64,000 bases of DNA from Mustelus asterias. Its lineage: Eukaryota. Both the position numbers and the translations under genes were made by a program. The DNA lies in NCBI RefSeq assembly GCF_964213995.1, contig NC_135804.1, positions 58,900,001 through 58,964,000 of the forward strand, given 5' to 3'. Of the stretch, positions 481 to 61,245 are shown one piece after another; the stretch's first letter is position 1, and every line of letters starts with the position of its first letter. Below the pieces are notes generated by a model. That model had not been told where the DNA came from and ran no database searches. It saw only the letters and a program-made list of their open reading frames with translations.

Positions 481-588
481 CAGCTGAAGCTTTTAATTTG
501 AGTCTCGTCAAAATAATTATCAACAGTACAACAGCCAATGCGCCGCCTGCACATCCGAAAATGAGCGTAAATTCGATTCCTGAAATAG
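481..588 (-). CDS. Gene B transmembrane exon
   Basis: AISGIEFTLIFGCAGGALAVVLLIIILTRLKLKASA; an alternative in-frame acceptor lies 9 nt downstream (exon start 579). Confidence 0.9.
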
Positions 589-3500: not shown

Positions 3501-6500
3501 ATCTAAATTGGCTCCAGACAAGATATAGTTATATGTATAGATTAAAACCCGTGAGTTACCATTGATTACACAACATTTCAATGCCCGTGGTTGAGGTTTC
3601 AGATCGTGCAATTTTCACCAAAGCATCTTTCTGGGGGCTGGATGCGAATGTTGGAGTATTTTGCAAGCCAGGATAATTTTTGATAATTATATATCGCTAT
3701 GTAGATCACAACACCCAGGGATTAATTCCAGAGATAAAAACAGGCCCCATGTTGGTAAACTCAGCGGTTTGACTGAGTTTTCATTTCAGATTTCCAGCAA
3801 CGGCAGTATTTTGCTTTTATTTGACTGGTTAGTTTGCCCTTCTGCAATTTTACTCGATCTGCTGAACACATTTTGTCTGGAGAAGATTCCGCTTCGAGCA
3901 GCCCAAAGTTACAATTTTCTGATGTGAACCGCTCTATCTATCTGTCCACTCTATCTCCAATCACCTTTTAACTGGACGTGAAGTCTCGTTTCATCGATTT
4001 ATTTATTAGAATCAATCTCCTTAATATTTTTTATTTACAAGTCTACTTTTCCGACATTGTAGCTCCTTGACACAAATTAATAATTTACAAGTATTATTAA
4101 CTTTCAAAATTATGTTAGTCTTTATTCCCAGCCAAACCTCAGAATTCCTCCATTCTTTCCCCATGGACCTGCTTTAGGTACAATACAAAATGCGACAGAA
4201 TTCCCGCTGGGGAGAAAGAAGCGCATGGGGACTGTACACAGAAGTAATGAATTACACATAGACGTTTATAGAAATGTTCGGTGGTATCCATTCTCCACTT
4301 TACCAGTTGTGAGTGCATCATAGAAAGTCCAGTTGGCGTACCCCAAAGGTTCAAACCAGAGCATCGGGCACCTTAACTGTCCTGTAAAGTCCAGGACCCG
4401 GGGTGGAATCCAGCATTGAGGGAAAGATCAAAACCCTCCTTCTCAGAGGATTGTAGCATTCCATTGTGGAAAGATCTTGGAATTTCAAACAAGTTACTAA
4501 TGGACACAACTACAACATATAAACTGTTATCCTAGGAACAGGGGCCCATTCAGCCCGACTCCCTTTGCTCTGCCAACCTTGGTGATAGTGATTAACACTG
4601 CTGCCTCACAACGCTAGGGACCCGGGTTCAATTCCTGGCTTGGGTGACTCTGTGCGGAGTTTGCACATTCTCCCTGTGGGTTTCTTCCGGCTGCTCCAGT
4701 TTCCTCCCAAACTCCAAAGATGTGCTGATTAGATGGATTGGCCATGCTAAATTGCCCCTTAACGTTCGGTGATTTAGCAGGGTAAATACGTAGGGTTAGG
4801 GGGATAGGGCCTGGGCGCGATTGTTGTCGGTGCAGGTTCGATGGGCCAAATGGCTTCCTTCTGTACTGTAGGTATTCTATGATTCTGCCTGATCTCTAAG
4901 TCAACTCCATTTGTCCGACTTAATTCATACTTAGCAAAAATCTAGCCGTCGCAAATTTAAGGCAATGACGTAAAGAAAGTGTTACATCAGCAATTTTGGG
5001 CAGTGGGCGGAAAAGGGATCTGATTTTGGAAATACTCGTTGCTATACTCGGGGAATTTTCACCTGAGTTTATCATGAAGGCACTTAGAGTGAGGGTTCAG
5101 AAAAGGTTTGTTGGAGATTTACCAGGGTCAAGGGTTGTAGATTATGTGCAGAGACTGAAGAAACCACGGTTGTTCTCTTTAGACCTGATAGCTTTAAGAG
5201 GAGGCTGGATAGCGATTTTGAAAGTTCTGACAAATTTGATAAAGTCAGTGAGCAGAAAGTGTTCTCAGTGACACAAGAGTCAGCAACCAGAAGGTGTTTG
5301 GCAAAAGAACGCAAGGATTCTGATCTTTGAGTGGAACGTAATGACAGTCAAGTCCCTGTTATTGTTACCATGTTGTTCAGCTTAAATCGCGAGCAGTGAG
5401 TGTAGGGATCCCGATTGATTTTCGCTTCCTGGTTAAATCAACTAACTCGGCATTTCGAAACGGCCCTGCAACAAACAGAAATGCCTTGAATAACCGGTCT
5501 TACTTTCCTCGAAATCTTCTTTTTGCAATCACCTTTGCGGGGGAATATTCCTTCCTTTTTGATTTAAGTTAAATGATCTTTGAAGTTTTGTAAAAGATTT
5601 GACCTGGGAGGTGTTAAAATTGCTTACATTGTTCAATTGTGGCACCATTGTGGCGAGAAGGAACCAGACCCTAACATCCCATTACAACATCAATGCAAAA
5701 CACTGCACAGGCTTGAAATTTGAAATACAAACCGAAAATACCGAGAATGTTCAGAGTTCGGGCAAGATCTGTGTAGAGAAACTGAGTTAACGTTTCAGAT
5801 CATTTCATCATCGACATGAAAGGTTAACTTTGTTTCCCTCCACAGAGAGAACAGATATGTTGAGGTTTTTCCAAATTTTTCTCTTTATATTTCGTGTATT
5901 TCCATTGCTTAATTTCAAAATGAAAATATCCACTGTGCATCGAGGGAGGTCAGTGGAGGACAATCCAGTGTTCTGTTAAAATAATTCGCTATAACCAGCT
6001 TTTCCTCCAGTGATAAAAAAATCAAATTGCATATATGGCGCTGAGCTGAAATCCTCCCGTTTACAATAACACCTACCGTACACAGTAAGCTGGGTGCCAG
6101 TTCCAGTTTCATTAGATTTTTCTGGATATTTTACTTTACAATAATACACTCCGGAATCTGCGAAAGTCACATTCAGGAATTCAAGCGAACTTCTTCCCTT
6201 GTTCGCATCAAATCGCTTTCTGCTGTCTGGTTGGAGAAAGGATTGCTCTCCGCGTCTCCACCAACGAACATCGGGCGCATCTTGAAATATGGGAAATGTG
6301 CAGAACATGGAAGCATTCGCGCCTCTGCTCACCTTCAAGTATTTAGGGATCTGAACCACTTCGTTCCAAGTTACTCCGGCGGCTGTCAGGAAAGTAACAA
6401 AGGCGGTGAGGTAACAGATAAAGAAAAATAACTGAGAGAAGTAAATTATACAAACAAGCAATCGAATTAGAGAAGCACAGTATCCAATTTTACAGTGGGT

Positions 6501-6625
6501 AACAGCTCCAGAGTCTTTTAAATTAGGATCTGCTATTGTGAAATCGGCAGCATCTAATAACGAAATGTACCTGGCCAAAACACGCCCAGGAGAGCCATGT
6601 AGTGAACTGTAACTTGTATCGACAT
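481..6625 (-). CDS. Gene B: paralogous leader-V(J)-C1-TM IgSF receptor, 3' exons beyond the left window edge
   Basis: join of 6571-6625, 6077-6382, 2542-2838, 481-588; open frame, GT-AG introns; leader, V and C1 exon sizes identical to gene A (55, 306, 297). Confidence 0.88.
1318..1660 (+). mobile_element. HE1-type V-SINE
   Basis: tRNA-like head with A/B boxes (GGTTCGATTCC), V-domain core, LINE-derived tail. Confidence 0.9.
1776..1982. mobile_element. Palindromic mini-Penelope insertion
   Basis: Inverted pLTR arms; flanking duplication GCTTACTTAAGG (1764-1775, 1983-1994). Confidence 0.8.
2542..2838 (-). CDS. Gene B C1-set exon
   Basis: VPPTPLK..FECKTAAFYPEDLKISW..YTCLASH..; AAG| acceptor and G|GTAAGA donor. 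Confidence 0.93.
3103..3234. mobile_element. Palindromic mini-Penelope insertion
   Basis: Inverted arms; duplication CGGAATTAAAGC (3091-3102, 3235-3246). Confidence 0.8.
4190..4482 (-). pseudogene. Fossil extra C1 exon in gene B V-C1 intron
   Basis: IPRS..DLSLNAGFHP..TLQDS*..FYKRLCVIH; homologous to 59520-59832. Confidence 0.5.
4580..4885 (+). mobile_element. HE1-type V-SINE
   Basis: Diverged copy of 1318-1660. Confidence 0.8.
6077..6382 (-). CDS. Gene B V-set exon with J-like G strand
   Basis: ASMFC..VRWW..ADSGVYYC..ETGTGTQLTV; CAG| acceptor, G|GTAGGT donor. Confidence 0.93.
6571..6625 (-). CDS. Gene B leader exon MSIQVTVHYMALLGVFWP
   Basis: Homologous to gene A leader, CAG|GTACAT donor. 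Confidence 0.85.
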
Positions 6626-6776
6626 GTTGCATTTCGTTAGCTACTTGCTGCAAATGAGAATGATATCTACGATGGTTTGCCTAAGTAATAGATTTCATGG
6701 TTAAATATACGAAACGTGTGACCATGACATGAGAGATCACATGACTGAAACAGCGTATTGTGTTCGTTTACATTTC

Positions 6777-6821
6777 TGTGTGTGTGTGTGTGTGTTATAT
6801 GTGGGGGGGGGGGGGGGGGGG
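6777..6821. repeat. (TG)n plus poly-G tract upstream of the gene B ATG exon
   Basis: Direct reading; the homologous position in gene A has only a short TG run. Confidence 0.9.
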
Positions 6822-7171
6822 AGGGTGGTGGTCGCGGTAGAAGCTGACCTCCTAACTGCCGCCGAAAGGCTATCACTTGAAGACCAATTTTCTGCAGCCA
6901 CTTTCGGAACACTTCGTTCCCGATTTTCTTTTTAACACCAGACTTTGATTCTTCACTTAATCCTGAAAATAACGATGTCGGCTGCAGGCGGCCTTCCAGC
7001 GCTTCATCTGAGATATCTTATTTTCCTGTAGGAGCATAAAGTCTGCAAATATTTACCCTGAGTACTTTGAACTGAGTGCGATCGGGACCTCAAGCAACCT
7101 CCAGCCACCTGACTTGTAGCAGAATCACTGGAATAACTATTCAGATTAACAATCTCCCTATATTAGTTGCA

Positions 7172-19611: not shown

Positions 19612-19925
19612 GGGGTGGCATGGTGGCACAGTGGTTAGCGCTGCTGCCCCACAGCGCCAGGGACCTGGGTTCAATTCCAGCCTTGGATCACTGTCGGTGT
19701 GAAGTTTGCGCATTTCCCTGTGTCTGCGTGGCATTCCTCCGAGTGCTCCGGTTTCCTCCCACACTCCAAAGATGTGTGGGTTAGGTTGATTGGCCATGCT
19801 AAATTGCCCCTTAGTGTCAGGGGACTAGCAGAATAAAGACGTGGGGTTAGGGGGATACGTAGGGTTGTTGTCGGTGCAGGCTCAATGGGCCAAATGGCCT
19901 CCTTCTCCACTCTACGGATTCTATG
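19612..19925 (+). mobile_element. HE1-type V-SINE
   Basis: Full head-core-tail. Confidence 0.85.
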
Positions 19926-20424
19926 ACAAAGTGTTCTGATTGGGAGGTTAACTTATTGTTTCACTTGACAGATGGTGATTTGCCCATTGAGCATTTCCAG
20001 TATGTTCTCTTTTACATTACACACAATTGCACTGAGTCTACAGCACAGATACAGACTATTCGGCCCAATTGATATATGCTGGCATTTATGCACCTCTCCC
20101 TCTCTTCATTTATCCTCACCGACATATTTCCTTCTGCCTCTTCTATGTTTCATGCTTCCCTCTTAAATGTGTCTATACCATTCTCCTGAATGATCCCTAT
20201 ATCTAGTGTGTTCCATATTCTTACCACCTACTATGTATAGAAGCTTCTCATGAATTCTCGATTGGATATATTTATGCCTGTTGTATGTTTCTATCCTCAG
20301 GTTTCGGATTCCCTCACAAGTGGACTCATTTTCTCTGCATCAAACCTATTAACGCCGTTCATAATTTCAATGGCCTCGATCGGGTCTCCCTTCAGCTTCC
20401 ACTTTTTCACTCATTTACAATGAT

Positions 20425-21949: not shown

Positions 21950-22240
21950 GAACAAGAGTTTCCGAAAAAGAAGTGAACATTTGTAATTTACAAATTCGGG
22001 TCTGAACAGAAAGAGGAGCCGCTTCTGCGGGTTAATGCCGCATCTTTTTAAGGTGCATACATTCCGACCGTCCTTCACTACTTAGTAGTATTGACCCCAG
22101 GTCCAATTTTCATGCTGTTCTTATACTCGAGTCACATGTAGATCTCCAGGGTAAAACTAGGCTGTTTTTCCAGGAAAGTCACTGAGGAGGATGGACAGAA
22201 TTTACACTCGATCGAGCCGATCCTCGGATGAATGGGGCGA
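21950..22240 (-). pseudogene. Decayed C1 exon of the third family member
   Basis: KTA*FYPGDLHVT..YKNSMKIGPGVNTTK**RTVGMY aligns with KTAAFYPEDLKISWQRDGVEILAGIETVRNETVDGLF; several stops; boundaries approximate. Confidence 0.7.
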
Positions 22241-23090
22241 ATTTGGGAGGGAAGGAAAATGATTTTGTTTTTAAAATATTGATTACTATTTTATTTCAGT
22301 AGCCTATAATTTAGCACACATGTTTAGGACAGGGCATGTAACATCGTGCTTCATTGGAGCTTTTTAAATTTCTTCGTTTTCAAACACTATTTATCATGGA
22401 ATTAGAAATTATATGGACCCTTGAATAGAGGAAGAGAAGTGACAGACATAAATATGTATAGTAGAATCACTGGGCCGTAGAGCATAGAGCGAGGTAATTC
22501 GGCCCAAATTGCCTGTGTTGGCTCTTTGAAAGAATTATATAATTGGTCTCACCATTGGTCTTTCTCCAAAGCTCTGGATTTCTAAATTTTTAAGTATGTG
22601 TCCTATTCCCAATAATAAAAGTATTATTGCTTCTTCCAGGTAGGGAATTCCGGATCGTAGCATTTTAGCTCGGAAAACATTTTTTCTTCCCCTACGATCT
22701 TGCTCTTTTGACCATTTTCATGAATTTGGTCCTTTGGTTACTGAATCGTAGTTTATCCTGTTACAGAATCTGATAACCATACACTGTAGGAATCCATTTG
22801 CTCAGTGTGCTAGGTTGGTTCTGCAGATGCCATCCAGTTTGTCTAATTGACCTATTTATTCATTTATCTTTAAAAAATATGGATAATCCTGCTACAATAA
22901 CAAGTTGTAAACTTAAATAGATGTATTGTAAATCGGCAATCTTACTCCGAGGCTGGCTGGATGCTGATACTAGATGCAAACCCCTCTGCAGTTGTTTCAT
23001 TCCTGCACTCTTCACTAACTCGTTGATATGTTACCAAGCATCTTTTGTATAGTTGATCCCTGAAACATTCAGAACTTGCAACTCAAGGGG

Positions 23091-32059: not shown

Positions 32060-32171
32060 GCTAAAGTAAATTTTGGTCCCTTACAGGATAACACGGCAGA
32101 AGTAATAATTGGAAACAAGGAAATGGCAGTAACTTTAAACAAGTACCTTGTATCTGTCTTCATAGTAGATG

Positions 32172-47191: not shown

Positions 47192-48770
47192 TTAAGAACA
47201 TAAGAACATAAGAAATAGGAGCAGGAGTAGGCCATCTAGCCCCTCGAGCCTGCCCCGCCATTCAATAAGATCATGGCTGATCTGACGTGGATCAGTACCA
47301 CTTACCCGCCTGATCCCCATAACCCTTAATTCCCTTACCGATCAGGAATCCATCCATCCGCGCCTTAAACATATTCAGTGAGGTAGCCTCCACCACCTCA
47401 GTGGGCAGAGAATTCCAGAGATTCACCACCCTCTGGGAGAAGAAGTTCCTCCTCAACTCTGTCTTAAACCGACCCCCCTTTATTTTGAGGCTGTGTCCTC
47501 TAGTTTTAACTTCCTTACTAAGTGGAAAGAATCTCTCCGCCTCCACTCTATCCAGACCCCGCATTATCTTATAAGTCTCCATAAGATCCCCCCTCATCCT
47601 TCTAAACTCCAACGAGTACAAACCCAATCTCCTCAGCCTCTCCTCATAATCCAAACCCCTCATCTCCGGTATCAACCTGGTGAACCTTCTCTGCACTCCC
47701 TCCAATGCCAATATATCCTTCCTCATATAAGGGGACCAATACTGCACACAGTATTCCAGCTGCGGCCTCACCAATGCCCTGTACAGGTGCATCAAGACAT
47801 CCGTGCTTTTATATTCTATCCCCCTCGCAATATAGGCCAACATCCCATTTGCCTTCTTGATCACCTGTTGTACCTGCAGACTGGGCTTTTGCGTCTCATG
47901 CACAAGGACCCCCAGGTCCCTTTGCACGGTAGCATGTTTTAATTTGTTTCCATTGAGATAGTAATCCCATTTGTTATTATTTCCTCCAACGTGTATAACC
48001 TCGCATTTCTCAACGTTATACTCCATTTGCCATATCCTCGCCCACTCACTCAGCCTGTCCAAATCTCTCTGCAGATCTTCTCCGTCCTCCACACGATTCA
48101 CTTTTCCACTTATCTTTGTGTCGTCTGCAAACTTCGTTACCCTACACTCCGTCCCCTCCTCCAGATCATCTATATAAATGGTAAACAGTTGCGGCCCGAG
48201 TACCGATCCCTGCGGCACGCCACTAGTTACCTTCCTCCAACCGGAAAAACACCCATTTATTCCGACTCTTTGCTTCCTGTCGGATAGCCAGTCCCCAATC
48301 CACTTTAACACACTACCCCCAACTCCGTGTGCCCTAATCTTCTTCAGCAGCCTTTTATGGGGCACCTTATCAAACACCTTTTGGAAATCCAAAAACACCG
48401 CATCCACCGGTTCTCCTCCATCAACCGCCCGAGTCACATCTTCATAAAAATCCAACATGTTCGTCAAGCACGACTTTCCCCTCATGAATCCATGCTGCGT
48501 CTGATTGATCAAACCATTTCTATCCAGATGCCCTGCTATCTCCTCTTTAATAATGGATTCCAGCATTTTCCCTACTACAGACGTTAAGCTGACCGGCCTA
48601 TAGTTACCCGCCTTTTGTCTCCTTCCTTTTTTAAACAGCGGCGTAACATTAGCCGTTTTCCAATCAACCGGCACTACCCCAGAATGCAACGAGTTTTGAT
48701 AAATAATCACTAACGCATCCACTATTACCTCTGACATTTCTTTCAATACCCTGGGATGCATTCCATCCGT
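47192..48770 (-). mobile_element. Young 5'-truncated CR1/HER1-type LINE with intact RT frame
   Basis: 495-aa uninterrupted ORF with PQGSVLGP and FADD; (TTCTTATG)n tail. Confidence 0.93.
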
Positions 48771-49709
48771 TATTTTCAATGTTATTGAAAATAGTATATT
48801 GGATCAGCCTCTGGTCTATATTTCTATAGCACTTGGGGCGAATGGGAAGAAAGGTTATTGGGAAAAAACTGGATTAGGCTATTGAGTTGGATGATCAGCC
48901 ATGATCGTAATGAATGGCGGAGCAGACTCGAAGGGTCAAATGGCTTCCTCCTGCCCCTATCTTTTATGTTTCTATGTACTCTAGTGATCTTTCCTCTCTA
49001 ACAGTAGAACCTGTGTCCCTGTGCAGATTAGCTTGTCTGTCTCTCTGATGGAAATGGGCTACTTTAAAGAATAATTTTGGAAGCAGCTTCATTCAGTGCA
49101 TTTTATGGAGTTTCGGGCGCAGGGGCTTTCCTCATCCCTCTCTATTCTGTGACCGAAAAGACCGTGATTCAGATAGTATTTACAGCGAATGATTGCTGCC
49201 ACCTCAGGCAGTCACTCGGTGACAATGGACTTTGAAAGGCAACTGTTAAATTTGTTACACAATAGAAATGAATACTCATTTTTCAAAAGTTGAATCGATT
49301 GACACTTCCTTGGAGTTCAAGCGACTCCTCGTGAAATTGTATGATACAAACCATGCACGCGGCATTTTAAGAACGATCACAAGTTGACATTACAAAATGT
49401 CGATGCCAATTAGTTGCTAATATCACAATAAGATCACCCTGCACATTTGAAATCCGGAAGACGGGTAGATTTTCAACTTGTCGACAACCTCAGACTGGTT
49501 TTGGAAATCTTGCCCTGGTCACGGAAAGCAGCCGATATTGGATTGGTTCTATAATAGTCCAACGAGCAATTCTGCCAGTTATGATGTTCTAGATAGTTAG
49601 CCTGGCTGCAATCAATGTAAACAGTAATGGATGCATTTTAAGATTTATAATCGAATAGTCTGATCCTGCACTCATAAATATCTCACACCTGCAAACAGTA
49701 TTTAGATTC

Positions 49710-49847
49710 TCAACTTCTTTCTTTCTTTGTCACGTTCACTTCAGCATACACTGCGCGTTTGTTTTGTTTAAGTTTTGATGGGTCCTTGGAATCAGCAAGC
49801 TGCAAGGCGGCATAAGTCAGCTTGTTATCTCCACCTCTTTGTTTAGT
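49710..49847 (-). CDS. Gene A terminal exon (ITIM LTYAAL; AVYAEV), stop TGA
   Basis: TTTCACAG| TKQRGGDNKLTYAALQLADSKDPSKLKQNKRAVYAEVNVTKKERS*. Confidence 0.85.
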   Translation of the reverse strand, partial: TKQRGGDNKLTYAALQLADSKDPSKLKQNKRAVYAEVNVTKKERS

Positions 49848-52800
49848 CTGTGAAAGTAATATTTAATATCACCGTAAATCCATCATCCAATCATTATTGA
49901 GACAATTGACATTTTAACGAAAGACTTATGGAATTTCCTTTCATTAGTTCCAATTTCAGATTGTAATCGGATTTTGGACTGGCTTCCTTTTCCTTCTCTG
50001 CAGCCCTCCCCCAAATCTTGTTGAAATTCCATTTGAACTTTCGTGTAAAATGAGTTCGTCTGTTAATATAGCTCATTGAAGTAAGCAGATTAATTATTTG
50101 ACTAAAATAAAAAAAGTAATTCCATGCTGCTCTGTTAAGGCTGTTGGGAAAGCTGATATTACACAAGATTGTTTTAAGGCCCAATTGTCTGAACATCGAC
50201 AGCCGCAGTGCCCTGCTTATCCCACGGGGGAAGGCTCGAGGCCACATTTTTCAATCGCCTTACCGCCATTCCCCCTAAGCTCCCGATCTCTGGGGCATGA
50301 GGCAAAAATGACGAACTTGTTTGAAATCAACCGACAGAGCACAGTTGGCAGATTAAGCAAGGAACCTTCCCATTTCCTGCATCTCAGTGTCGTATCACAT
50401 AATATTGATGCCATTACAGTAAATGACCTAAGATCTACCTGGGAATATACGATACTCTCCTCCCCCTGCCTGGGGTTCGCCTTTTTCCTGGTGTCAATTT
50501 TGACTGTGGCATAGGTCAGGCTGTTGGCGGTGCCGTGTTTTGTCTGTAAAATAGATATTTTCCACATGTAGTTGGTGAATTTCTTGTTTCGTAGTTTGGG
50601 ACAAGCATTATTCCAGGCAGACCCGAAAAAGAAACGTGGATAATATTGACTCTGTTTTTGTGTAAAACCGACTACGAGCCCGCAGCCCGATTTGCAACTC
50701 TCCAAATTGCTATTTCCAACCAAGTCAGCAGGAGAAATGCCAATTAATAAGGACTTGTTGAAATCTGTCCCATAAAGATAAAACTTTCCCCAATCCGCTC
50801 AGATTCTGAACAATTAATCAATATTGACTCTGTCATGTATGGTCATATCGTAGAATCCATACAGTGCAGAAGGAGGCCATTCGGCCCATAGAGCCTGCAC
50901 CGACCACAATCCCACCCAGGCTCTATCCCCTTAAATCCACCTAATCCCCGCTAATCCCCTGACATTAAGGGGTAATTCACTTAACTTGCACATCTCTGGA
51001 GTGTAGGAGGAACACAGTAAGAAGTTTAACAACACCAGGTTAAAGTCCAACAGGTTTATTTGGTAGCAAAAGCCACACAAGCTTTCGGAGCTCTAAGCCC
51101 CTTCTTCAGGTGAGTGGGAATTCTGTTCACAAACAGAGCATATAAAGACACAGACTCAATTTGGATGAATAATGGTTGGAATGCGAATCAACTAATCAAT
51201 ATATTCGGGTAAGCGTTCTCCAAGGCAGCCTTCGTGACACACGACAGCGCAGAGTCGCTGAGCAGAAACTGATAGCCAAATTCCGCACACACGAGGACGG
51301 CCTCAACCGGGATATTGGGTTCATGTCACACTATTTGTAACCTCCACAGTTGCGTGGACCTGCAGAGTTTCACTGGCTGTCTTGTCTGGAGACAATACAC
51401 ATCTTTTTAGCCTGTCTTAATGCTCTCTCCACTCACATTGTTTTGTTTCTTAAAGACTTGATTAGTTGTAAGTATTCGCATTCCAACCATTATTCATGTA
51501 AATTGAGTCTGTGTCTTTATATGCTCTGTGTATGAACAGAATTCCCACTCACCTGAAGAAGGGGCTTAGAGCTCCGAAAGCTTGTGTGGCTTTTGCTACC
51601 AAATAAACCTGTTGGACTTTAACCTGGTGTTGTTAAACTTCTTACTGTGTTTACCCCAGTCCAACGCCGGCATCTCCACATCGTGTAGGAGGAAACCAGA
51701 GTACCCAGAGGAAACCCACGCCAACATGGGTAGAATATGAATGTACAAACTCCACATAGACAGTTACCCGAGGCCGTAATTGAACCTGGGTACCTGGCGC
51801 TGTGAGGCAGCGGTGCTAACCACTTAGTTTGAGTATTTTTCGCCTCAATCCCTCAGTCCTACCTGAGAATAGATGGTGTGCTCTTTCTTGTGTCTCGGTT
51901 TGGAGGGTCCTTTTTCTTCTCTCAGGCTCAGACTAGCGTAGGCGACAATGTTCTCACCTGGCCTTTGTCTAACCTGTAAAAATAAGACACAAAATATTGA
52001 AAGCGGCGAGTCTGTCTCTATAGCAAGCTACTGTCAATTCTAATTAATTCTGTCACTGTAAATATGCAGACAGTAAACGATAAACTAGGTTGCAAGTGCA
52101 CTCTCTCCCTTCTCGACTATTGTATCAAATATCGAACCAATCAGGTGGAGAGTATTTGTTTAATCAGTTCAAGGGATGTTGGCTTCGCTGGCTAAGCTGA
52201 CATATGTTGACAGTCGATAATTGCCCTTGGACCGCTCCAGTCGGTGTGGGGTATGTGCGTCCATGGTGTTTTTAGGGAAGTACTTCTAGGATTTTGACCC
52301 AGCGACAGTGAAGGAACTGCGATTATTTTCCAAGCCAGGGTGGTCAGTGGTTTAGAGGGGACCTTCAAGGTGGTGTTCCTATATATCTGGCAGCTTTGAG
52401 ATAAGGCGAGTTGGTGCTGCTGGAGAGAGAGATCAGTCGAAAAGAAAAGCAGTACAGCTTCAGATAGGCATTCCTGGAAGATAAGTGGCAGTGGAGTAAA
52501 CACAAAGATAAAAGCAAAATATTGCAATGCTGGAATCTGAAACAAAATCAGAAAACACTGGAAAATCTCAGTAGGTCTGACAGCATCTGTGGAGAGTGAA
52601 TAGAACGTTGGCTCTATTCTGTTTCCACAGATGCTGTCTGACCTGCTGAGATTTCCAGCATTTTCTGTTTTTGTCTCAGATTCCAGCACCCACAGTATTT
52701 TACTTCTGGCTTTTGGGCCGTATATCTGCTGCTCTTGTCCTTCTAGGTGACAGTGGTCGTGAGTTTGGAAGGTGCTGTCTAAGAAGCCTTAATGAGTTTC

Positions 52801-55800
52801 TGCAATGCATCTTGTAGATGGTATACACTGCTGCCACTGTGTGTCGGTGGTGGAGGAAGTTTTCTTTGTGGGTGGGTTGCCAATCAAACGCCCGCTTTGT
52901 CCTGGATGGTGTCGAGCTTCTTGAGTGTTGTGGAACTGCTCTCATCCAGGCAAGTGGAAAGTATTCCATCACACTCCTCACTTGTGCCTTGTAGATTGTG
53001 GACCTAGTCAGGAAGTGAGATACTCGCTGCTAGATTCTTAGCCTCTGACCTGCTCTTGTAGCTGCAATGTTTATATAAGAATATAATAAACATAAGAACA
53101 TAACAACTCGGAGCAGGAATAGGCAAATTAGCACCTCGAGCCTGCTCTGCCATTCAATACGATCATGGCTGATCTCATTTCAGCCTCATCTGCACCTTCC
53201 TACCCATTCCCCATAACCATTCATCACAGGGAACAAACCATGTGACACACTACTAGTTACAGCTTGCCAACCAGAAAAAGACCCATTGTTCCCACTCTCT
53301 GTTTTCTGTTGGTTAGTGAATCCTCTATCCAAACTAATATATTACCCCTAACCCCATTTTACCATCTGTACTAACCTTTTGTGTGGCATCTTATCAAATG
53401 CATTCTGAAAGTCCAGATATACTATACCTATAGAATCTCCAGTATCCACTTTGCTTGTTACATCTTCGAAGAGTTAGTTAAACATGATTTACCCTTCTTA
53501 AAAACATGCTGACTCTGATGGATTGCGTTTTGATTTACCAAATGTCCCTTTACTACTTCCTTAATAATGGATTCCAGCAATTTTCCAATGACAGGCGTTA
53601 AACTAAGTGGTTTATAGTTTTCTATTGTTTACATTTCTACATTTTTGAACAGAGGTGTTACATTAGTCTTTTCCCAATCTCCTACAATCCCTACATTGTA
53701 GAAGGAGGCCATTTGGTCCATCGATTTTGCACCAAGTCTCTGACAGAGCATCTTATCCAGGCCCACCCCCATTCCTATTCCCGTAACCCCATGCGTTTAC
53801 CATGCTAATCCCCCTAAACTACACATCCTGGGACACCTAGGGACAATTTAACATGGCCTTTCCACCTAATCTACTGGAACTTTTCCAGAATCCAGGGAAC
53901 TTTGGGACTTCTAACCAATGCCTCCACTATCTCTGCTGCCACTCCCTTTAAGATGTACGTCATCATGCCCTGGAGAATTGTCTGCCTTTAAGCCCAATAG
54001 TTCGGTCAGTACTTTTTCTCTAGTGAAGGCGATTATTTTAAATTCCTCCTTTTGAACAATCACCGCATTACCTGTTAATATTGGTATGGCTCTAGCCTCC
54101 TCCACTGTGAAAACCGGGACAAAATATTGATTTAGTGCCCTACCATTTCCGTGTTCCCCATTATTAACTCCTCAGTCTCGTCCTCTAAGGAACCAACGCT
54201 GTCTTTAGCTACTCTCTTCCTTTTTATGTACTTACAGAATCTTTTCCTCTCCGTTTTATATTTGCACTAGATTTGCTGCCATGCAGACATATGGCTCGTC
54301 TAGTTCAGTTTCTGGCTAATGTTCTAAATATGGAACCCAGAGCTCTTGATAAATTTACGTGCATTTAAAATTGTCACTATTTGGAACACCGCTAATAATT
54401 ATATAATTAATAATACACATTTTTAATTTCCCAATTACCTCCAACCGCTCCCCCCGCCCCCCGCCCCCCATCGGAGCAACCATTGTCTTCTTATTGCAAC
54501 CTATTGGAAGACTTGACTGCAATGCCTGAGTTTGTCTTCCTTTCACTTCCAGAAACGTCCATCCCAAGGTGGAAATCAACAGCCCGGACCCTGGCAAACG
54601 CTCACTCCCAGCGTCACTTCTCTCCCTCCGCCTCCCCTACCTCGACTTCCATGCGCCACTGTGCAATCTGGAGAGGTTTCAGGCCAATTAAGGTACCAGT
54701 AGCAGTGTTCCAGCCTGGCTTAGCCAACACACCAGAACCTGAGATCTTCCTGGTCTGTCTACATTAAGCACCTGGACATCTGGAAATTTCCTTATTTTGA
54801 AATAAATTTAAGTTTCTAAGGGGGAATCAACAGTATATAATTGTTGTCAAGGTAAATAGTTACCTGGTTCTTAAAATAAAGGAATAGAGTGTAGAAAGAA
54901 GCAATACTTTCAAACTAGCCAGGCCTCAACTGGAAATCGTGTCCCACTCCGGGACCTTCAATTTGGGAAGGATGTCAAGGTTTGGAGAGGAGATTTATTG
55001 GAATGTTACCAGGGCTGAGGGACTTCAGTGATGTGCGGGAAACTAGAGAATCTATCATTGTTCTCCTTACAGCAGGGAAAGAATTCTCAGAGGTTTATTC
55101 CGATCAAACGAGGCAAAACTGTTACTCTCGGTGGTTTGCTCGCTAACCAGGGGATTCGGATTTTGATAATTGGGAAAGATAAGGATTTTTCCGCAGCTTG
55201 CTGTTGTAATCTACAATGCCCTGACTGAGTGGCGGAAGCATATCGAATAGAAACTTTCAGAAAGGGGATTGGAGAAATGTTTTTAAAAATGTCGTTTGTA
55301 GGTAAAGCGTAAGGGAGTGGAACTCGCTGGGCACTTATTTCAAAGAGGCGGCACAGCTACTTTCTTTCCATACTATAAAATTCTATGGTTATTTTAAAAC
55401 TAATTGGTATCTTCCTGGCTGAATATAGAATTTCCTTCTCACCGCCACCCTCCATTCACCCCCACCCCCTCACGCCACCTTTTTGCAATATAAAATAAGG
55501 CATTGCCACCCTACCCGTTCTTCTCTCTGAGCTGCTTCCACGGAATTTCTATTATCGTCTAAAAGAGAAAAAAGACGTGAGCAACTGGATCAGTGCACAA
55601 GCGAAACCAGTATCGTGCTTTTGATGCTAAACAAATTTGTATACAGTAAGGAAACCTGAATGCTGAAGTTGTTCAGCAGCATTAACCGCAGTATACTGTG
55701 CATTACCTTCTCATTACCCACAGTGACCCGCAGCACACAAGGTCTACTCAAGTCTTTGTACAATGGCGCGAAGGATTTGATAGGGAATCGATAACCCTTT

Positions 55801-58800
55801 AACAATTTCAAGTTTTCAAAATCCGCTTTACGTTGCCATTTTCAAGTCTCAATCACATAACACTCGTGTGATATCAACTTCGTTCTTTAACGATTTTGCA
55901 AAGGGCTCTTTATCCCTCTACAATGAATCTATGTATTTTAACAGTGTAACCGCGCATGAGAAAATAAAAATATGCAGCGAAATGTTAAAGGTACTTACCA
56001 GCTGATGCCTTTAATTTGAGCCTCGTCAAAATAATTATCAACAGTAAAATCGCCAATGCCCCGCCTGCACATCCGAAAATGAGCGGAAGTTTGACACCAC
56101 TATCTACAAGAACAAATGATTGAAATAAGAAACTGCGCGACTCAGCGAGATTCATACACAGGTGCAAATGTGTCTCTGAGAATAATCGCTCCTACTGTCA
56201 GTGGATCTCGACCGCTTTCACTTGTGAATTGTAGCTGAACAAAGATCACAACGTTTATCAAATCGCATAAACTGCACGTTAGTAATGCAATTTATGGAGG
56301 AAACACGTTTCATTCCATAACGGCGCAGTAAGCTTCTCATTGGCCTGAAGGGTTATTTGGTAAGAGTGAGGGAATGTACATTTCTTTCACCTTGACGCGC
56401 TGCACCAGACTGATGCGCAACGTCACAAAAAGTGACAAAGGCTTTCATTCTTCAGCGCGGACAACCATCCCCAGCCTTACCAGAGAACCTTGTTTTTGGG
56501 AGATAGCAAAAGCAATTTCCATACAAATCAGGAGCAGGTGTAGGCCATTCTGACCTGCGACCCAGCTCCTCTATTTGGCTGATCCATTGTGGCCTCAACT
56601 CTACTTTCCTCTTTATCTCCTGTAACTTTTAACTCCCTTGTCAATCAAAAATCTATCTAACTCAACCTTAAAAATATTCAATGACCTTGCAACACAACTT
56701 TCTGGGGAAGAGAATGCCAGAGACCAACCACGTCTTGAAAGAGAGAAAAAACTCGCCCCGTTTTAAATGGGAGGCCTCTTACTGTTAAAGAGTGTCCCTA
56801 ACATTAGCTCCCACATTTTCTCAGCAACCATCCTGTCAGGTCTCCTCAGGATCTATGTTCCAGAAAGATCACCCCCATTCTTCTAAACTCCAGTAGATAC
56901 AGGCCCAACCTGCCCCATCTTCCCTCATAAGATAACATCTTTGTTCCAGGAATCAGTGCAATGAAACTGCTTCTGAAGAAATTACATCCTTTCTTAAGTA
57001 AGAAGACAAAACTCCAGATGTGTACTCCAGATGAAACTTGCATTTATATAGCGTCTTCAACGAAGTAAAACCTCGAAAGATATTTCACGGAGCATTATCA
57101 AACAAAACTGAATACCGACTCACATCAAATGAGAGTGGAAGAGGTGGCGTTGGGGTTCAAGAACAGTCTTAAAGAAGCCGGAGCCGGAGAGGAGGGAGGT
57201 TTCCGAGAGTCGGGTGTTGACTGCTGAGAACACATTATTTTATTTTATATTTTAAATCCCAAGCAGGAGGCCATCTGGCCCATCGTGTTTGCACCGACAA
57301 CAATGCCATCCAGGTCCCATCCCCGTAGTCGCACATATTTACCCTGCTAATCCCCTTGACACTTAGGATCAATTTAACATGGCCAATCAAACTAACCCGC
57401 ACATCTTTTTGGGAGAAAACCGGAGCACCCGGAGGAAACCAAAGCAGACACTGGGAGAATGCTCAAACTCCACACAGTCACCGAAGGCTGGAATTGAACG
57501 TGGATTCTGGCGCTTTGAGGCAGCAGTGCTAACCACTGTGCCACCGTGATGATAACAATGACCCTCCCATGTATTGAATTGAAATGCTATAATTGCATGA
57601 TATAAAATTTAATCTTTAAGAACCGATCTATTTATCTATTTCATTTGGCAAGAATTTGGCGCGGAATGAACTTTCAGTTTTAATCAGTTCGCACATCAAC
57701 CTCCCGACCCAGATCTTTTGAAGGAAATATTCTCCCTCCTCTGGCTGCAAACTACCTTGATTATTTAAATTCATTCCCGTTGATGTGACATTGAGATTGA
57801 ATAAGGTCCACATTCACTCTATAATTTCGAGTTTGAATAGCTGCCCAACTACATGTCCAATAAATAACTACAGGTTGGAGCATTTCCCCCGCTCACTGCT
57901 GTAAATGTTTCAAATCTTACCTTGAATGGCGATATAGCTGACACTGGCGGGCACCTTAAGGGAGATATGAGATGCCAGGCATGTATAAACTATTCGGTTC
58001 GGGGCAGGCTGTGTCTCTTCCAAAGAACTGGAGACCTCAAAAAGACCATCCACTGTCTTGTTTCTCACAGTTTCTATTCCGGCCAGAATTTCCACACCAT
58101 CTCTTCGCCAGGAGATTTGTAAATCCTCTGGGTAAAAGGCGGCCGTTTTACACTCGAATCTCAGAGAAGTCGCTGAAATCCCTTCAACCTGAAGGAGATT
58201 CAGGGGGGTTGGGGGAACTTTAATAGAGAAATATAAGGACAATTAATTGAGCACATTCTAATTCGTCTACCTCCATTATGTTGTTACATTCCTAACGTGA
58301 GAATCGTCCGTGCTATCGTTTTTTAAAAAATGAACTCATATCTGCATTTATTTTAAAAATCTTTTCGCCGCGCACAGCAAATTGTTCGGAAGTATTGCAA
58401 ACTGCGAGGATGAATCGCCCAGACTTGGTGACAATTGATAAAGCACCTGTCACTGTTCTGAATGGAAACACAGCTCCTGGGATGAGATATATAAATGCAC
58501 ATTTTTCTGTAAGAGTCGTGGTCGTAATAAGCATTCTTATTAAAAATCAATTGTCCGAATATTTCATGTATTGTGAAACATATTTTGTTTTAACAATCGA
58601 TATTGAGAACATATGCGTAACTGTAATGTACAAGATGCACTGCAGGAACTCAAGGTTCCTTAGGCAGCACCTTCCAAACCCATAACGACCACCATCTAGG
58701 AGGACAAGAGCCAAGGAGGTTCCCCTCCAAGTCACTCACCATCCTGACTTGGAAGTATATATACACCAGGGACTGCACCGGTTCAAAAAGGCAGCTCACC

Positions 58801-61245
58801 ACCGCCTTCTTAAGGGCAACTAAGGATGGGCAATAAATGCTGGTCTAGTCAATTTTTCATAAATTAATTTTGAAAAAGTATGCCCAATATCTGTAAAGAT
58901 TCCAGACAAGATGTTACTTTATTTATACATAAAAATCCATGCTTTTATTAAACAACATTTCTATGGAGGGTGTTTCCGATCGTGTAGCATCTACAAAAGG
59001 AACTGTTCCCAGAGGGGCGTCCGAGGGCGAAAGCACATTTTTCGTCAGGAAAGGGCTTTATTGTTAATTCTTCATGGGTGTGTAGATCACAACATCCATG
59101 CAGAGTGAAGACAAATAAAAAAATCTTTACTCAGAATGCATGTGTAATCTAATTCCACGGGTTTTGCCCTTCTACAATTTCATTTGGTCTATTGAACACG
59201 CTTTACCTGGAGAATTTCCTCTTATATCAATCCTACATTTAAAATTTACTGCTGTGAACTTGTGTCCGCTAGTTCCATAGTCACTGTTTAACTGGAAGTA
59301 AATTCCCTCATTAGGTTTACATAGATTTGCACATTATAATCAATCTCCTTAATATATTTTATTTAGAAGTCTATTTTGCCGACATTGTAGTAACAGTAAT
59401 TAGTAATTTACACGCATTATTAACTTTCAGAATTATGTTAGTCTTTATTCCCAACAAAGCCTCAGAATTCCTCCATTATTGTCCCAAGGATCTGCTTTAG
59501 GTACATACGAAATGCGACAGAATTCCCGCTGGCCAGAAAGGAGTCAGTGTTCTCTCGGTCTCCTGCCTCAAACTTTCTTCTGTACATGGCGAGTGTGCAT
59601 GGAAATTACAAATACGGGACCTCAGACGTTCATAGAAATGTTCGGTGATATCCACTTTACCGGTTGTGAGTGCATCAGAGAGAGTCCTTTTGGTGCACCC
59701 CAGAGGTTCAAACAAGGGCCATGGCACCTTAACTGTCCTGCAAGGTCTAGGGGTGGAATCCAGCATTGAGGACAAGATCAACATATCCCCTCTCACTAGT
59801 TTGTAGGATCCCGTTATGGAAAGAGTTCGGAATTTCAACCAAATCACTAACGGACACAAGTGCAAATATAAACTGCGGATATAGAAACAGGGGTCCATTC
59901 GGCCCCACTAGCTTACTCTGCCATTCCTTTAAATTATGTCTGATCCATTTGTCCGACTTAGTTCCATTCTCTTGAAACCCACGATTTATTTCCCTTGATA
60001 TGCATCGAAAATTTAGTACAGCTCGATTATTCGATTGCAATTTTGAGCAGGGGCTGACAAGTTAGTTTGTGTATGGAATACTCATGCCTTTAAGTAGGCG
60101 AGTTTTCGCCTGAATGGATACAGGAGGCACCTTATTGGGACGAATAAGATGGTCATTAATGTTGCAGAAACTAATTAATTTCGGCGGTGTTAAAATTGTT
60201 TCAATCAAAGGTCGTAGATCTGAAACCTTGACTCTGTCCACAGATGTTCAATTACTTGTTTTCTGTTTTTATTTCAGGTTCCAAGCATATGAAACATTTT
60301 GCTTTTGTACAAAAATTGTCCCCAGTGTCGCACTTTGGCGTCGTTATTTTGGTGAGAGGGAACCTGACCATCTCATCCCATTGACTAATCGCAAACTGAG
60401 ACTGCAACTGTTATCCCGCTTCACTGTTTTTGGCGCAATAATAATTGCAACTTCACACATGGCACACATTGGGTGAAATGTCACGAAGACGAGAGTGGGT
60501 GAAATTGATCTTGGGCAGTGGCACAAAGCGGGCGAGAGGGAATCGAGGGCCGTTCTACAACAAGGTGACGGGAAAAGAAAATCCCAGCAGTGTAAAACGA
60601 ATCCGTCATTACCAGGTTTTCATCTAGTGATAGAAGTTCAAATTACACAAATCACGGATAGCTGAAAAGTACCCTTTCCCCGGTAGTTTGACACTTACCG
60701 CACACAGTGAGCTGGGAACCACTTCCATCCCCAATCTTGTTCTGTTGATGTTTTACTGAACAGTGATACATTCCGGAGTCTGCAACACTCGCATTCAGAA
60801 CTTCAAATGAACTACTGCTCTTCTTTAGATACATTTTCTTTCTGCTGTCTGGTTCCAGAACAGATTCCTCGCCCCGTTTCCACCAAGAAACTTCAGGAGC
60901 ACCATCAAATATGGGAAATGTGCAGAACATGGAAACATTGTCACCCCTGGCAACCGTCAAGTGTTTAGGGAACTGTTCCACTTTGCTCCAAGTTACTTTA
61001 GCGGCTATAAAAAAAACAGTAAAGAACGGTGATAACTAGAAAGAAAAATAACTTAACAGAGGAAAACAAATTAAGAGACACCAGCAGTCAGATTGGAGAA
61101 GCACAGCATCTATTTTTACAATGCATACAGTTGTAGACGTAAAATACAATTTAAGCTGTTCTAAAACGGCGAAGTAACAACTCAGGCTACCTGGCCAAAC
61201 CAGACTCAGAAGAGCCATGTACTGAACTGTAACTCTCATCGACAT
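49710..61245 (-). CDS. Gene A: inhibitory IgSF receptor, leader-V(J)-C1-TM-cytoplasmic multi-ITIM (SIRP/NKp30-like architecture), 8 coding exons, 386 aa
   Basis: join of 61191-61245, 60699-61004, 57921-58217, 55999-56103, 55515-55558, 51863-51973, 50439-50543, 49710-49847. All introns GT-AG, phases 1,1,1,1,0,0,0 compatible, 1161 nt open from ATG to TGA. Confidence 0.88.
50439..50543 (-). CDS. Gene A cytoplasmic exon 7 (ITIM LTYATV; IVYSQ)
   Basis: TTTTACAG| TKHGTANSLTYATVKIDTRKKANPRQGEESIVYSQ |GTAGAT; 105 nt, phase 0-0. Confidence 0.85.
51073..51117 (-). ncRNA. Minimal hammerhead ribozyme motif, sense to gene A pre-mRNA
   Basis: Exact reverse complement of 51545-51589. Confidence 0.7.
51545..51589 (+). 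ncRNA. Minimal hammerhead ribozyme motif (Penelope type)
   Basis: CAC-CTGAAGA-A-GGGGCT-TAG-AGCTCC-GAAA-GCTT-GTG: core boxes, stem II, palindromic AAGCTT stem III. Confidence 0.7.
51863..51973 (-). CDS. Gene A cytoplasmic exon 6 (ITIM VAYASL; TIYSQ)
   Basis: TTTTACAG| VRQRPGENIVAYASLSLREEKGPSKPRHKKEHTIYSQ |GTAGGA; 111 nt, phase 0-0. Confidence 0.85.
52503..52710. repeat. Older palindromic repeat of a second Penelope-like family (also ~5690-5895)
   Basis: TGCTGGAATCTGAAACAAAA.. / ..TTTTGTCTCAGATTCCAGCA inverted arms. Confidence 0.6.
53085..54275 (-). mobile_element. Decayed CR1-type LINE fragments with nested SINE tail
   Basis: 3' tail at 53085; KADNSPGHDDVH fragment. Confidence 0.7.
55515..55558 (-). 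CDS. Gene A short cytoplasmic exon DDNRNSVEAAQREER
   Basis: Strong polypyrimidine TTTTAG acceptor, CGG|GTAGGG donor; 44 nt converts phase 1 to phase 0 as the next exons require. Confidence 0.75.
55999..56103 (-). CDS. Gene A transmembrane exon (no charged residue)
   Basis: DSGVKLPLIFGCAGGALAILLLIIILTRLKLKASA, basic stop-transfer residues, TGTAG| acceptor and G|GTAAGT donor. Confidence 0.9.
56525..57030 (-). mobile_element. Decayed CR1-type LINE 3' end
   Basis: LSYEGRWGRLGLYLLEFRRM. Confidence 0.7.
57262..57547 (-). mobile_element. HE1-type V-SINE
   Basis: Reverse-orientation copy. Confidence 0.8.
57921..58217 (-). CDS. Gene A C1-set Ig exon
   Basis: FECKTAAFYP..ISW..DG..DGLFEVSSSL..YTCLASH are C1-set motifs (CxxxxFYP, YxCxxxH); 297 nt, AG/GT flanked. 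Confidence 0.93.
59520..59832 (-). pseudogene. Fossil extra C1 exon in gene A V-C1 intron
   Basis: IPNS..DLVLNAGFHP*TLQDS* and FYERLRSRI match VPPT..ECKTAAFYPEDLQISW and VYTCLASHI; acceptor reads AA instead of AG. Confidence 0.5.
60699..61004 (-). CDS. Gene A V-set Ig exon with germline-joined J-like G strand
   Basis: VSMFC...VSWW...ADSGMYHC...GDGSGSQLTV; poly-T/TAG acceptor, G|GTAAGT donor; 306 nt. Confidence 0.93.
61191..61245 (-). CDS. Gene A leader (signal peptide) exon MSMRVTVQYMALLSLVWP
   Basis: ATG at 61245, hydrophobic stretch, CAG|GTAGCC donor in phase 1; same 55-nt coding length as gene B leader. Confidence 0.85.

Follow-up and report, generated by a model that had tools for sequence, protein, structure and literature searches.

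The 64-kb stretch of DNA analysed here (the window) is best interpreted, with a probability of roughly three in four, as part of a tandem array of cartilaginous-fish, non-rearranging immunoglobulin-superfamily receptors in which two genes, A and B, are of the inhibitory type. Each gene is predicted to encode, after the leader, a single V domain that shares its exon with a J-like strand, then one C1-set domain, and finally a transmembrane segment followed by a cytoplasmic tail. As the initial annotation had suggested, the window contains two members that look intact and one pseudogene, and many further members are present among database proteins of cartilaginous fish. The evidence for the gene models and for the family is considered below, followed by the relation of the family to known receptors.

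Organisation of genes A and B and of the third copy

Gene A is predicted to span positions 61245-49710 of the minus strand in eight exons. The start codon and the split leader are found in exon 1 (61191-61245, 55 nt, ending in phase 1), with the ATG at 61245 and a donor GT at 61190-61189; the leader is 65% identical over 20 aa to that of the Heterodontus protein P0151. Exon 2 (60699-61004, 306 nt) encodes the V domain together with a germline J-like G strand, and is bounded by an AG acceptor and by a GTAAGT donor immediately 3' of the LTV codons. Against Pfam, this exon scored 36.7 bits as V-set and 42.2 bits as I-set, with 133 bits on the family HMM, and the V domain is 73-74% identical to those of P0151, P0168 and P0169. 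Exon 3 (57921-58217, 297 nt), with splice sites present, encodes the C1-set domain (Pfam C1-set 31.8 bits; family HMM 154 bits). Exon 4 (55999-56103, 105 nt) encodes a short stalk, an uncharged transmembrane segment and a basic stop-transfer sequence. No family protein matched this exon (56103-55999) among the exon-by-exon matches listed; on the family HMM it scored 34.8 bits and it was also matched by the transmembrane peptide of gene B.

The cytoplasmic portion of gene A is encoded by the remaining four exons. Exon 5 (55515-55558, 44 nt, with AG/GT borders) is a linker that takes the frame from phase 1 to phase 0 and was located by its match to P0168 of S. canicula (88% over 17 aa). Three tail modules follow. 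The first, in exon 6 (51863-51973, 111 nt), presents an ITIM-type VxYxxL motif and a second tyrosine at the exon end, and matches P0151 at 60.5% over 38 aa. The second, in exon 7 (50439-50543, 105 nt), presents LxYxxV and again a second tyrosine at the exon end; it is the least supported exon of the model, with a weak family HMM score of 14.3 bits (E 0.002). The third, in exon 8 (49710-49847), presents LxYxxL and YAEV before a TGA stop, matches the carboxy terminus of P0151 at 75.5% over 49 aa and scored 47 bits on the family HMM.

In the assembled model, all exon borders are AG/GT, introns 1-4 are in phase 1 and the tail introns are in phase 0. The coding total of 1158 nt gives an open frame of 386 codons, the length originally proposed for the protein. 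With single exons or natural database proteins as the queries, seven of the eight exons were matched, in order, by RefSeq proteins of other sharks. The 380-aa P0151 alone provided collinear matches to six of them, the linker being matched by P0168. No poly-A signal was found within 1.1 kb of the gene A stop.

Gene B is predicted from 6625 to 481 of the minus strand and runs past the window start. Its leader exon (6571-6625, 55 nt) is followed by an exon for the V domain and J-like strand (6077-6382, 306 nt), a C1-set exon (2542-2838, 297 nt) and an uncharged transmembrane exon (481-588, 108 nt), for which a second in-phase acceptor at 581-580 offers an alternative of 99 nt (579-481). The remainder of gene B lies outside, as the initial annotation had noted. 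The V domain scored 48.8 bits as V-set and 40.8 bits as I-set and is 73% identical to the S. canicula protein P0152. The C1 domain scored 37.0 bits as Pfam C1-set and 162 bits on the family HMM, and the transmembrane exon 31 bits on the latter.

The two genes show identities of 83.6% (nt) for the leader exons, 56% (aa) for the V domains, 88.6% (nt) and 80% (aa) for the C1 exons and 89.6% (nt) for the transmembrane exons. The matching exon sizes noted in the initial annotation hold exactly for the leader, V and C1 exons and fail for the transmembrane exon, which differs by at least one codon (105 nt in gene A against 108 or 99 nt in gene B). The decayed third copy noted earlier was recovered on the minus strand at 22006-23383 by tblastn and a three-frame reading, as remnants of V and C1 sequence interrupted by stops and frame shifts. 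Three colinear tblastn matches of P0039 were obtained (23383-23285, 23207-23091 and 22224-22006; E 2.6e-8 and 1.7e-5) with in-frame stops, and the family HMM gave traces only (E about 1 to 8). The introns of the array are rich in LINE and SINE insertions, and one LINE end adjoining the gene B transmembrane exon is 98% identical to another copy.

The domain types and the arrangement of V and J first described for these genes were upheld. In both, the GxG-bearing J-like G strand lies within the V exon and a splice donor follows directly. A scan for recombination signal sequences (RSS; heptamer at least 6/7, nonamer at least 7/9, spacing 12 or 23 ± 1) returned no RSS-like sites within the 64-kb window, with 0.96 expected in shuffles, and no RSS separates V from J. 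The C1 domains of both genes exceed the Pfam C1-set cut-off of 21 bits. The V-set scores are also above their own cut-off, with I-set scores about equal to them. A second C1 exon was sought in the V-C1 introns and not supported: the family HMM found nothing and tblastn gave E values of 2 (gene A) and 0.82 (gene B). The weak C1-like tblastn traces in these introns sit at homologous places of the two genes.

A probable paired receptor family of cartilaginous fish

The named matches to the family were all chondrichthyan (31 of 31 in one search and 42 of 42 profile matches in another), and members were found in both chimaeras and elasmobranchs. The family thus appears to be large and chondrichthyan-wide, judging from the sequences in the databases. 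On the family HMM, the C1 domains of members scored at least 75 bits (126 of the 196 proteins in the set). The best non-family single domain reached 53.9 bits, compared with the 154 and 162 bits of genes A and B. The layout of leader, VJ, C1, transmembrane segment, linker and tail is visible in an alignment of 20 members, and in a maximum-likelihood tree of C1 domains the 27 family rows, including both C1 exons of the window, formed one clade (100/98).

A multigene family in which non-rearranging VJ-C1 receptors combine uncharged transmembrane segments with ITIM-type tails had been foreseen in the initial annotation and does exist; the guess that its members are annotated only as SIRP-like also proved right. 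RefSeq names for the family are automatic and inconsistent, numbering six or more, the commonest type being SIRP-alpha-like ('tyrosine-protein phosphatase non-receptor type substrate 1-like'). No description of the family was found in the papers searched.

The consensus of an ITIM is (S/I/V/L)xYxx(I/V/L). Six tyrosines were counted in the three tail exons of gene A, as previously reported, and three of the six are in a canonical ITIM context; two others lose the hydrophobic residue at +3 once the exons are spliced. The tail consists of three repeated two-tyrosine modules, each with one canonical ITIM. Neither gene A nor gene B has a charged residue in its transmembrane segment, in keeping with the first description. 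With three canonical cytoplasmic motifs and an uncharged transmembrane segment, gene A has the predicted features of an ITIM-bearing inhibitory receptor. From the uncharged transmembrane segments of both genes and the ITIM tail of gene A, the two are classed as putative receptors of the inhibitory type. Other members (P0003, P0169, P0170 and P0022) carry a charged transmembrane segment and a short tail. Since the same ectodomain is found on this second type of anchor, inhibitory and activating members probably act together as a paired system.

Pairing is inferred, as are expression, the binding of a ligand and the recruitment of phosphatases. If these receptors behave like SIRP-alpha and other receptors with ITIMs, the V domain would bind a ligand, and Src-family kinases would phosphorylate the ITIM tyrosines. 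Phosphatases of the SHP-1 or SHP-2 type may then dock on the phosphorylated motifs and damp activation of the leukocyte bearing the receptor. The family may be viewed as a candidate paired-receptor system of shark innate immunity.

Relation to SIRP, UrIg and the antigen receptors

SIRP is the closest characterised family. Genes A and B resemble SIRP-alpha in a V domain that does not rearrange and includes a J-like GxG strand, in a C1-set domain and in an uncharged transmembrane segment, and gene A also in several cytoplasmic ITIM-type tyrosines. The SIRP family, like the shark family, includes charged-transmembrane relatives, an inhibitory form and a charged-transmembrane activating form being described in PMC12975943. 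There are also differences. SIRP is described in PMC2785349 as V-C1-C1, whereas genes A and B have a single C1 exon each. The three tail modules of gene A are unlike SIRP-alpha and the family, unlike SIRP, was seen solely in Chondrichthyes.

The family may comprise cartilaginous-fish orthologues or co-orthologues of SIRP that underwent expansion and now have one C1 domain after losing the other, a tentative reading that falls short of even odds and that, if true, would reduce the family to a lineage-specific expansion of a known one. Several comparisons point in this direction besides the shared inhibitory and activating forms and the automatic RefSeq names. The nearest named ESM Atlas clusters of P0151 are SIRP-alpha-like and SIRP alpha (score 0.96, 205 of 256 shared features). 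SIRP-alpha domain 3 aligns at 43.8 bits, the VPPT domain start included, and the J-like strand of the family aligns with the SIRP-alpha G strand. A ray member, P0005, has two C1 domains; however, the pair are near-identical recent duplicates. In the C1 tree, the SIRP-like domains are sister to the family, yet with a weak support of 64/75, and a clade with teleost IgL C domains was not rejected by the AU test (p-AU 0.316). Among the SIRP references, P0123 was confirmed as a homologue of SIRP d2-d3 and the lungfish P0094 was ambiguous. Separate V and C1 phylogenies had been suggested from the outset; the C1 tree was run with the above result, while the V-domain relations rest on a profile search of the PDB, named SIRP, NCR3, TCR and IgL V domains being absent from the set. 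In that search, the 60 highest-ranking PDB matches of the family V profile included no SIRP V domain, and the profile matches TCR and IgL V domains better. The whole-ectodomain profile gave the best V plus C scores to Ig light chains (69-73 bits), as opposed to 55.4 bits for SIRP-alpha V plus d2.

An origin among the antigen receptors themselves is suggested by some of the same data, namely that the family descends from a germline-joined IgL- or TCR-like minicluster that later gained a transmembrane segment and ITIM tail. Germline joining does occur in shark Ig clusters. This reading, under which the family would be a post-RAG derivative and not a pre-RAG relic, is considered unlikely. Scored on single V domains, the V profile found its best matches in those of TCR and Ig light chains (59 and 44-55 bits), with alignment through the J strand, and the highest V plus C scores belong to light chains. 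Ig light chains and TCR also have the V-J-C1 topology of genes A and B and a phase-1 intron after the J strand; a VJ exon with a phase-1 donor after the J strand, an intron and a C1 exon reproduces the layout of a joined light-chain cluster. The AU test, as noted, permits a clade with teleost IgL C domains. The maximum-likelihood tree, in contrast, sets the family C1 domains apart from IgL, IgH and UrIg. Genes A and B differ from Ig and TCR in having neither RSS nor a separate J segment, and no RSS remnant was found within the window. In true J segments a Phe or Trp precedes the GxG; this residue is missing from the J-like strand. Both genes are membrane-anchored, with an ITIM tail seen in gene A, unlike Ig light chains and TCR chains. 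Because chimaeras and elasmobranchs alike have the family, any germline-joining event would be very old.

Other non-rearranging receptors were also compared. The elasmobranch UrIg and UrIg2 resemble genes A and B in having a non-rearranging, single-exon VJ followed by C1-type domains (PMC12227049). Ranked by summed score, UrIg2 headed the PDB matches of the C1 exon (51.8 bits), but single-domain scores were only 30-50 bits. PMC12227049 describes a secreted UrIg with three C domains and gives nine for nurse-shark UrIg2; the term ITIM does not occur in its main text. UrIg and UrIg2 thus have three or more C1-type domains and genes A and B have one, and the UrIg-like C domains occupy a different part of the C1 tree. 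The number of domains and the place in the tree speak against membership of UrIg/UrIg2, which is rejected. Teleost NITRs and NKp30 (NCR3) are innate receptors with germline-joined, VJ-type V domains, and NITRs exist in both ITIM and charged-transmembrane forms. Neither NITRs nor NKp30 are known to have a C1-set domain adjoining the V domain. In the UrIg2 paper, NCR3 is named solely as an MHC-linked VJ-exon gene (PMC12227049). A low-confidence ESM Atlas model of P0151 (pTM 0.49) resembled B7, butyrophilin and C1-set clusters (TM 0.43-0.52) and was not used as evidence.

In the search for relatives of the gene split by the RAG transposon, attention goes to single-exon VJ domains joined to C1 domains, and UrIg and UrIg2 have been published as candidates (PMC12227049). 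A further proposal is that the shark family is a living descendant of a non-rearranging VJ-C1 membrane receptor ancestral to both SIRPs and the rearranging antigen receptors. The data are compatible with it: members occur in chimaeras as well as elasmobranchs, and the V and C1 domains fall, without a firmly supported position, between SIRP and Ig/TCR. It is nonetheless more doubtful again than a germline-joined origin. If it were true, the family would have retained a V domain closer to those of TCR and IgL than the SIRP V domain is, along with the single C1 domain and inhibitory tail, and the primordial antigen-receptor-like molecule would have served innate leukocytes as a paired receptor that signals through ITIMs. 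The argument for a pre-RAG ancestor has already been made for SIRP-alpha in PMC2785349, where descent from a precursor is described as indistinguishable from descent from an antigen receptor. The two are likewise indistinguishable for the shark family.

Returning to the interpretation of the window as part of an array of inhibitory-type receptors, such a VJ-C1 ectodomain is found on both inhibitory and activating membrane anchors in a large, apparently chondrichthyan-wide family. The family offers material for rooting V and C1 trees, in the form of many independent sequences of both domains from the oldest jawed vertebrates alive today. Since the idea is not new and genes A and B are ordinary members, the value of the window is as a lead and not as a surprise.

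Intactness of genes A and B

The least probable of the readings considered is that genes A and B only look intact and are in fact silent or degenerating members of an array with rapid turnover. Only two sequencing runs, from one study, contain the stretch; they hold 0.81-0.89 of its words, introns included, and because the stretch is mostly intronic both look like DNA. The dN/dS between genes A and B is below 1 (0.39-0.59), yet values of 0.55-0.59 are high and relaxed constraint would also fit. A clear pseudogene is located between the two genes, and the introns are packed with the insertions described above, including the 98%-identical LINE end. Against decay, reading frames are still open and splice sites still match the consensus in the eight exons of gene A and in the four of gene B, and the 88.6% identity of the C1 exons exceeds the 78.6% of the aligned block that includes flanking intron. 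A conserved block containing a TATA-like element is also present 5' of the start codons of both genes.

Gene models and domain composition

The window (64,000 bases, 0 N, G+C 0.44, CpG observed/expected 0.45) carries every feature of the finding on its minus strand. Gene A, the complete one of two intact-looking VJ-C1 receptor genes, was modeled from exon borders read from the DNA: a leader exon (61245–61191, 55 nt), a V exon (61004–60699, 306 nt), a C1 exon (58217–57921, 297 nt), a transmembrane exon (56103–55999, 105 nt) and a linker exon (55558–55515, 44 nt), followed by three tail exons at 51973–51863 (exon 6, 111 nt), 50543–50439 (exon 7, 105 nt) and 49847–49710 (exon 8, with TGA at its end). 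All introns follow the GT...AG rule. Introns 1–4 are in phase 1, as is general in immunoglobulin-superfamily genes, and the tail introns are in phase 0. Together, the exons comprise 1158 coding bases, equal to 386 codons, in agreement with the protein length given in the initial annotation. The linker exon was located solely by its match to P0168, a database protein of Scyliorhinus canicula (88%, 17 residues), and exon 7 scores weakly with the family HMM, a profile of family members applied to the exons of the window. No poly-A signal was identified within 1.1 kb of the gene A stop. Each search was run with either a single exon or a natural database protein as the query.

Gene B has leader (6625–6571), V (6382–6077) and C1 (2838–2542) exons of the same lengths as those of gene A and a transmembrane exon at 588–481 (108 nt; 579–481 if a second in-phase acceptor is used), beyond which it exits the window. 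The 200 bases 5' of both ATGs (61246–61445 in A, 6626–6825 in B) share a conserved block; it includes a TATATTTA element approximately 95 bases before the ATG and may represent the core promoter of the two genes.

The second immunoglobulin exon scores 31.8 (A) and 37.0 bits (B) against the Pfam C1-set model, which has a cut-off of 21. The first scores 36.7 (A) and 48.8 bits (B) against V-set and is nearly level against I-set (42.2 and 40.8 bits). In a PDB profile search, residues 3–101 of this domain align to residues 4–114 of TCR and light-chain V domains; thus, it is about ten residues shorter, and "short V domain" is the most fitting description.

The G strand of the V exon presents a GxGxxLxV pattern with the splice donor directly after it in both genes. 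In profile alignments, this J-like strand pairs with the strand that J segments encode in light chains and with its counterpart in SIRP-alpha. While true J segments have Phe or Trp before the GxG, members of the family have Asp, Thr or Asn. A scan of both strands for recombination signals (heptamer starting CAC with at least 6/7 matches, nonamer with at least 7/9, spacer of 12 or 23 ± 1) returned 0 RSS-like sites in the window, while 50 shuffles gave a mean of 0.96. The gene A V exon ends with a Cys codon (60700–60702) that follows the LTV of its J-like strand and is shared for example by the family proteins P0182, P0089, P0093, P0031 and P0007; Tyr, Phe or His stands at this position in gene B (6078–6080) and most relatives. 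Such an unpaired Cys, placed where V meets C1, could support disulfide-linked dimers.

Membrane anchors and the ITIM-type tail

In both genes, the transmembrane segment is free of charged residues, and a basic stretch comes directly behind it. Each of the three tail exons of gene A encodes two tyrosines, the first of which lies in a VxYxxL, LxYxxV or LxYxxL context that fits the ITIM consensus. In exons 6 and 7, the second tyrosine is three residues before the splice donor. Since the donors (51861–51863 and 50437–50439) follow YSQ codons and the introns begin with GTA, the +3 residue is Thr (YSQT) when spliced and Val (YSQV) on read-through, the latter being an ITIM/ITSM-like context. The final tyrosine of gene A has a YAEV context. 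We infer expression, a ligand and signaling for genes A and B.

Among the collected family members, three types of anchor may be distinguished. The first is an uncharged segment with an ITIM-type tail, usually of two modules; the second has an Arg near its start, Asp-His near its end and a short tail (e.g., P0003, P0169, P0170 and P0022); the third is a PWW-type segment with a Lys/Cys-rich tail (P0069 and relatives). An A-like V domain (74% to gene A) is found in S. canicula with an uncharged anchor in P0168 and a charged anchor in P0169, and a B-like V domain (73% to gene B) of the same species with a charged anchor in P0152. From these sequences, like V domains on uncharged and charged anchors appear to constitute a paired-receptor pattern.

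Two of the database proteins differ at the anchor or tail. P0163, a RefSeq isoform X2 from Heterodontus, lacks exactly the transmembrane exon relative to P0151 (Heterodontus, 380 aa), and remains in frame because the length of this exon is a multiple of three (105 in A; 108 or 99 in B). An isoform of this type would be a soluble form that still contains the tail sequence. The end of P0168 runs past the linker exon into the intron that follows.

Range and relations of the family

An exhaustive HMMER search of 1.84 billion representatives with the gene A C1 exon identified 427 proteins at E ≤ 0.001, many of which have 250–420 residues and match at about 120–220, consistent with a V-C1 layout. 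Automatic names that look-ups and two further searches gave for the family include tyrosine-protein phosphatase non-receptor type substrate 1-like, signal-regulatory protein beta-1-like, natural cytotoxicity triggering receptor 3 ligand 1-like, tapasin-related protein-like, immunoglobulin lambda-1 light chain-like, M1-specific T cell receptor beta chain-like and uncharacterized protein. All matches were from cartilaginous fishes in one search (31/31) and in a profile search at E ≤ 1e-15 (42/42); since both were pre-filtered by shared words, absence from other groups is not proven by these counts. The matched fishes belong to the genera Heterodontus, Scyliorhinus, Heptranchias, Mustelus, Mobula, Narcine, Hypanus, Pristis, Hemitrygon, Leucoraja and Callorhinchus, with Amblyraja, Hemiscyllium and Chiloscyllium added from other look-ups. 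Mustelus asterias is not among the species named in the family matches. The exons of the window are 74–77% identical to S. canicula proteins and 68–73% to those of Heterodontus. With a C1 HMM built from 20 family sequences, a score of at least 75 bits was reached by 126 of 196 collected proteins, and the top single domain of any non-family protein scored 53.9 bits, a gap that sets the family apart.

In the PDB, the C1 exon matched UrIg2 best (51.8 bits summed over three domains), followed by a lambda constant domain, B7-H6 and MHC class II beta. A full-length profile of 20 members, scored per stretch, gave 72.9 and 69.0 bits for light chains (V + C), 55.4 (V + domain 2) and 43.8 bits (domain 3) for SIRP-alpha, and 50.4, 29.7 and 39.9 bits for UrIg2. 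With a V-only profile of eight sequences, many-domain I-set proteins led the PDB matches through summed scores. Among single V domains, the best scores went to a TCR scFv (59 bits) and to those of light chains (44–55 bits); no V domain of SIRP, NCR3 or UrIg2 was present among the best 60 PDB matches. The family V domain looks more like those of antigen receptors.

A careful maximum-likelihood tree of 79 C1 domains (104 columns) united the 27 family rows in a single clade (support 100/98). Its sister is a group of eight SIRP-like domains (64/75), and the two together branch with a set of many-C1 proteins (66/88). Among the SIRP-like rows, P0123 was verified as a homologue of SIRP d2-d3 (SIRP-gamma 131.7, SIRP-alpha 130.4, next match 114 bits), and the lungfish P0094 is ambiguous (SIRP-alpha 80.6, IgA 79.9). 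A clade with teleost light-chain C domains, the one alternative submitted to an AU test, was not rejected (p-AU 0.316, log-likelihood difference 5.5). In the ESM Atlas, P0151 is nearest to SIRP-alpha-like and SIRP alpha clusters (0.96, 205/256 features). By overall make-up and probable function, SIRP is the closest characterised family and at most a candidate orthologue.

Hatherley et al. 2009 (PMC2785349) describe SIRP-alpha as a receptor of V-C1-C1 make-up that stands near the precursors of antigen receptors; genes A and B have one C1 each. According to the same paper, organisms older than adaptive immunity have no known SIRP gene, and an origin from a precursor and an origin from an antigen receptor cannot be told apart. 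UrIg and UrIg2 are described as non-rearranging VJ + C1 genes in PMC12227049, the main text of which has 0 occurrences each of SIRP and ITIM. A 2026 SIRP review (PMC12975943) contains none of the terms fish, shark, evolution, teleost, ortholog or vertebrates. Among the papers listed in literature searches, none was on a SIRP-like or VJ-C1 ITIM family of cartilaginous fishes; these searches covered main texts and a minority of subscription journals, so this is no proof.

History of the copies, introns and repeats

At the amino-acid level, genes A and B share 56% of positions in the V exon, 80% in the C1 exon and 82% in the transmembrane exon, with dS of 0.47, 0.19 and 0.31 and dN/dS of 0.59, 0.55 and 0.39, respectively. 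The difference in dS between V (0.47) and C1 (0.19) shows that the two halves have different histories, through either conversion or exchange of the C1-to-transmembrane part or old V lineages. The V lineages of A and B predate the split from S. canicula. In a quick tree, C1 exons of the same species pair together (SH-aLRT 84 and 92), which fits exchange or conversion of the C1-to-transmembrane part among paralogues, with modest support.

The third copy was searched by tblastn with all collected family proteins below 520 residues. P0039 alone gave three colinear matches (E 2.6e-8 and 1.7e-5), comprising V remnants at 23383–23285 and 23207–23091 and a C1 remnant at 22224–22006, all on the minus strand. 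In-frame stops are present and a three-frame reading revealed frame shifts as well. Since blastn with the gene A exons gave no match here and the family HMM gave traces alone (E 1 and 7.8), this pseudogene is old and belongs to a different branch of the family.

A block of the V-C1 intron (59163–59923 in A, 3833–4575 in B) is 72.5% identical between the genes; within it, tblastn yielded non-significant C1-like traces (E 2 in A, 0.82 in B) and the family HMM nothing. Next to the gene B transmembrane exon is a LINE end (1–439) that is 98% identical to a copy at 47200–47639, suggesting recent activity. LINE-type retrotransposons are also located at 40348–42756 and 47292–48779, with minus-strand ORFs of 802 and 495 aa in which reverse-transcriptase-like motifs were judged by eye. 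A SINE-like repeat of about 330 bases is present in at least 10 copies of 75–95% identity, several of them in introns of A and B, and among others at 1316–1660, 4587–4886, 19612–19926, 31166–31503, 32643–32954, 57262–57548 and 62100–62433.
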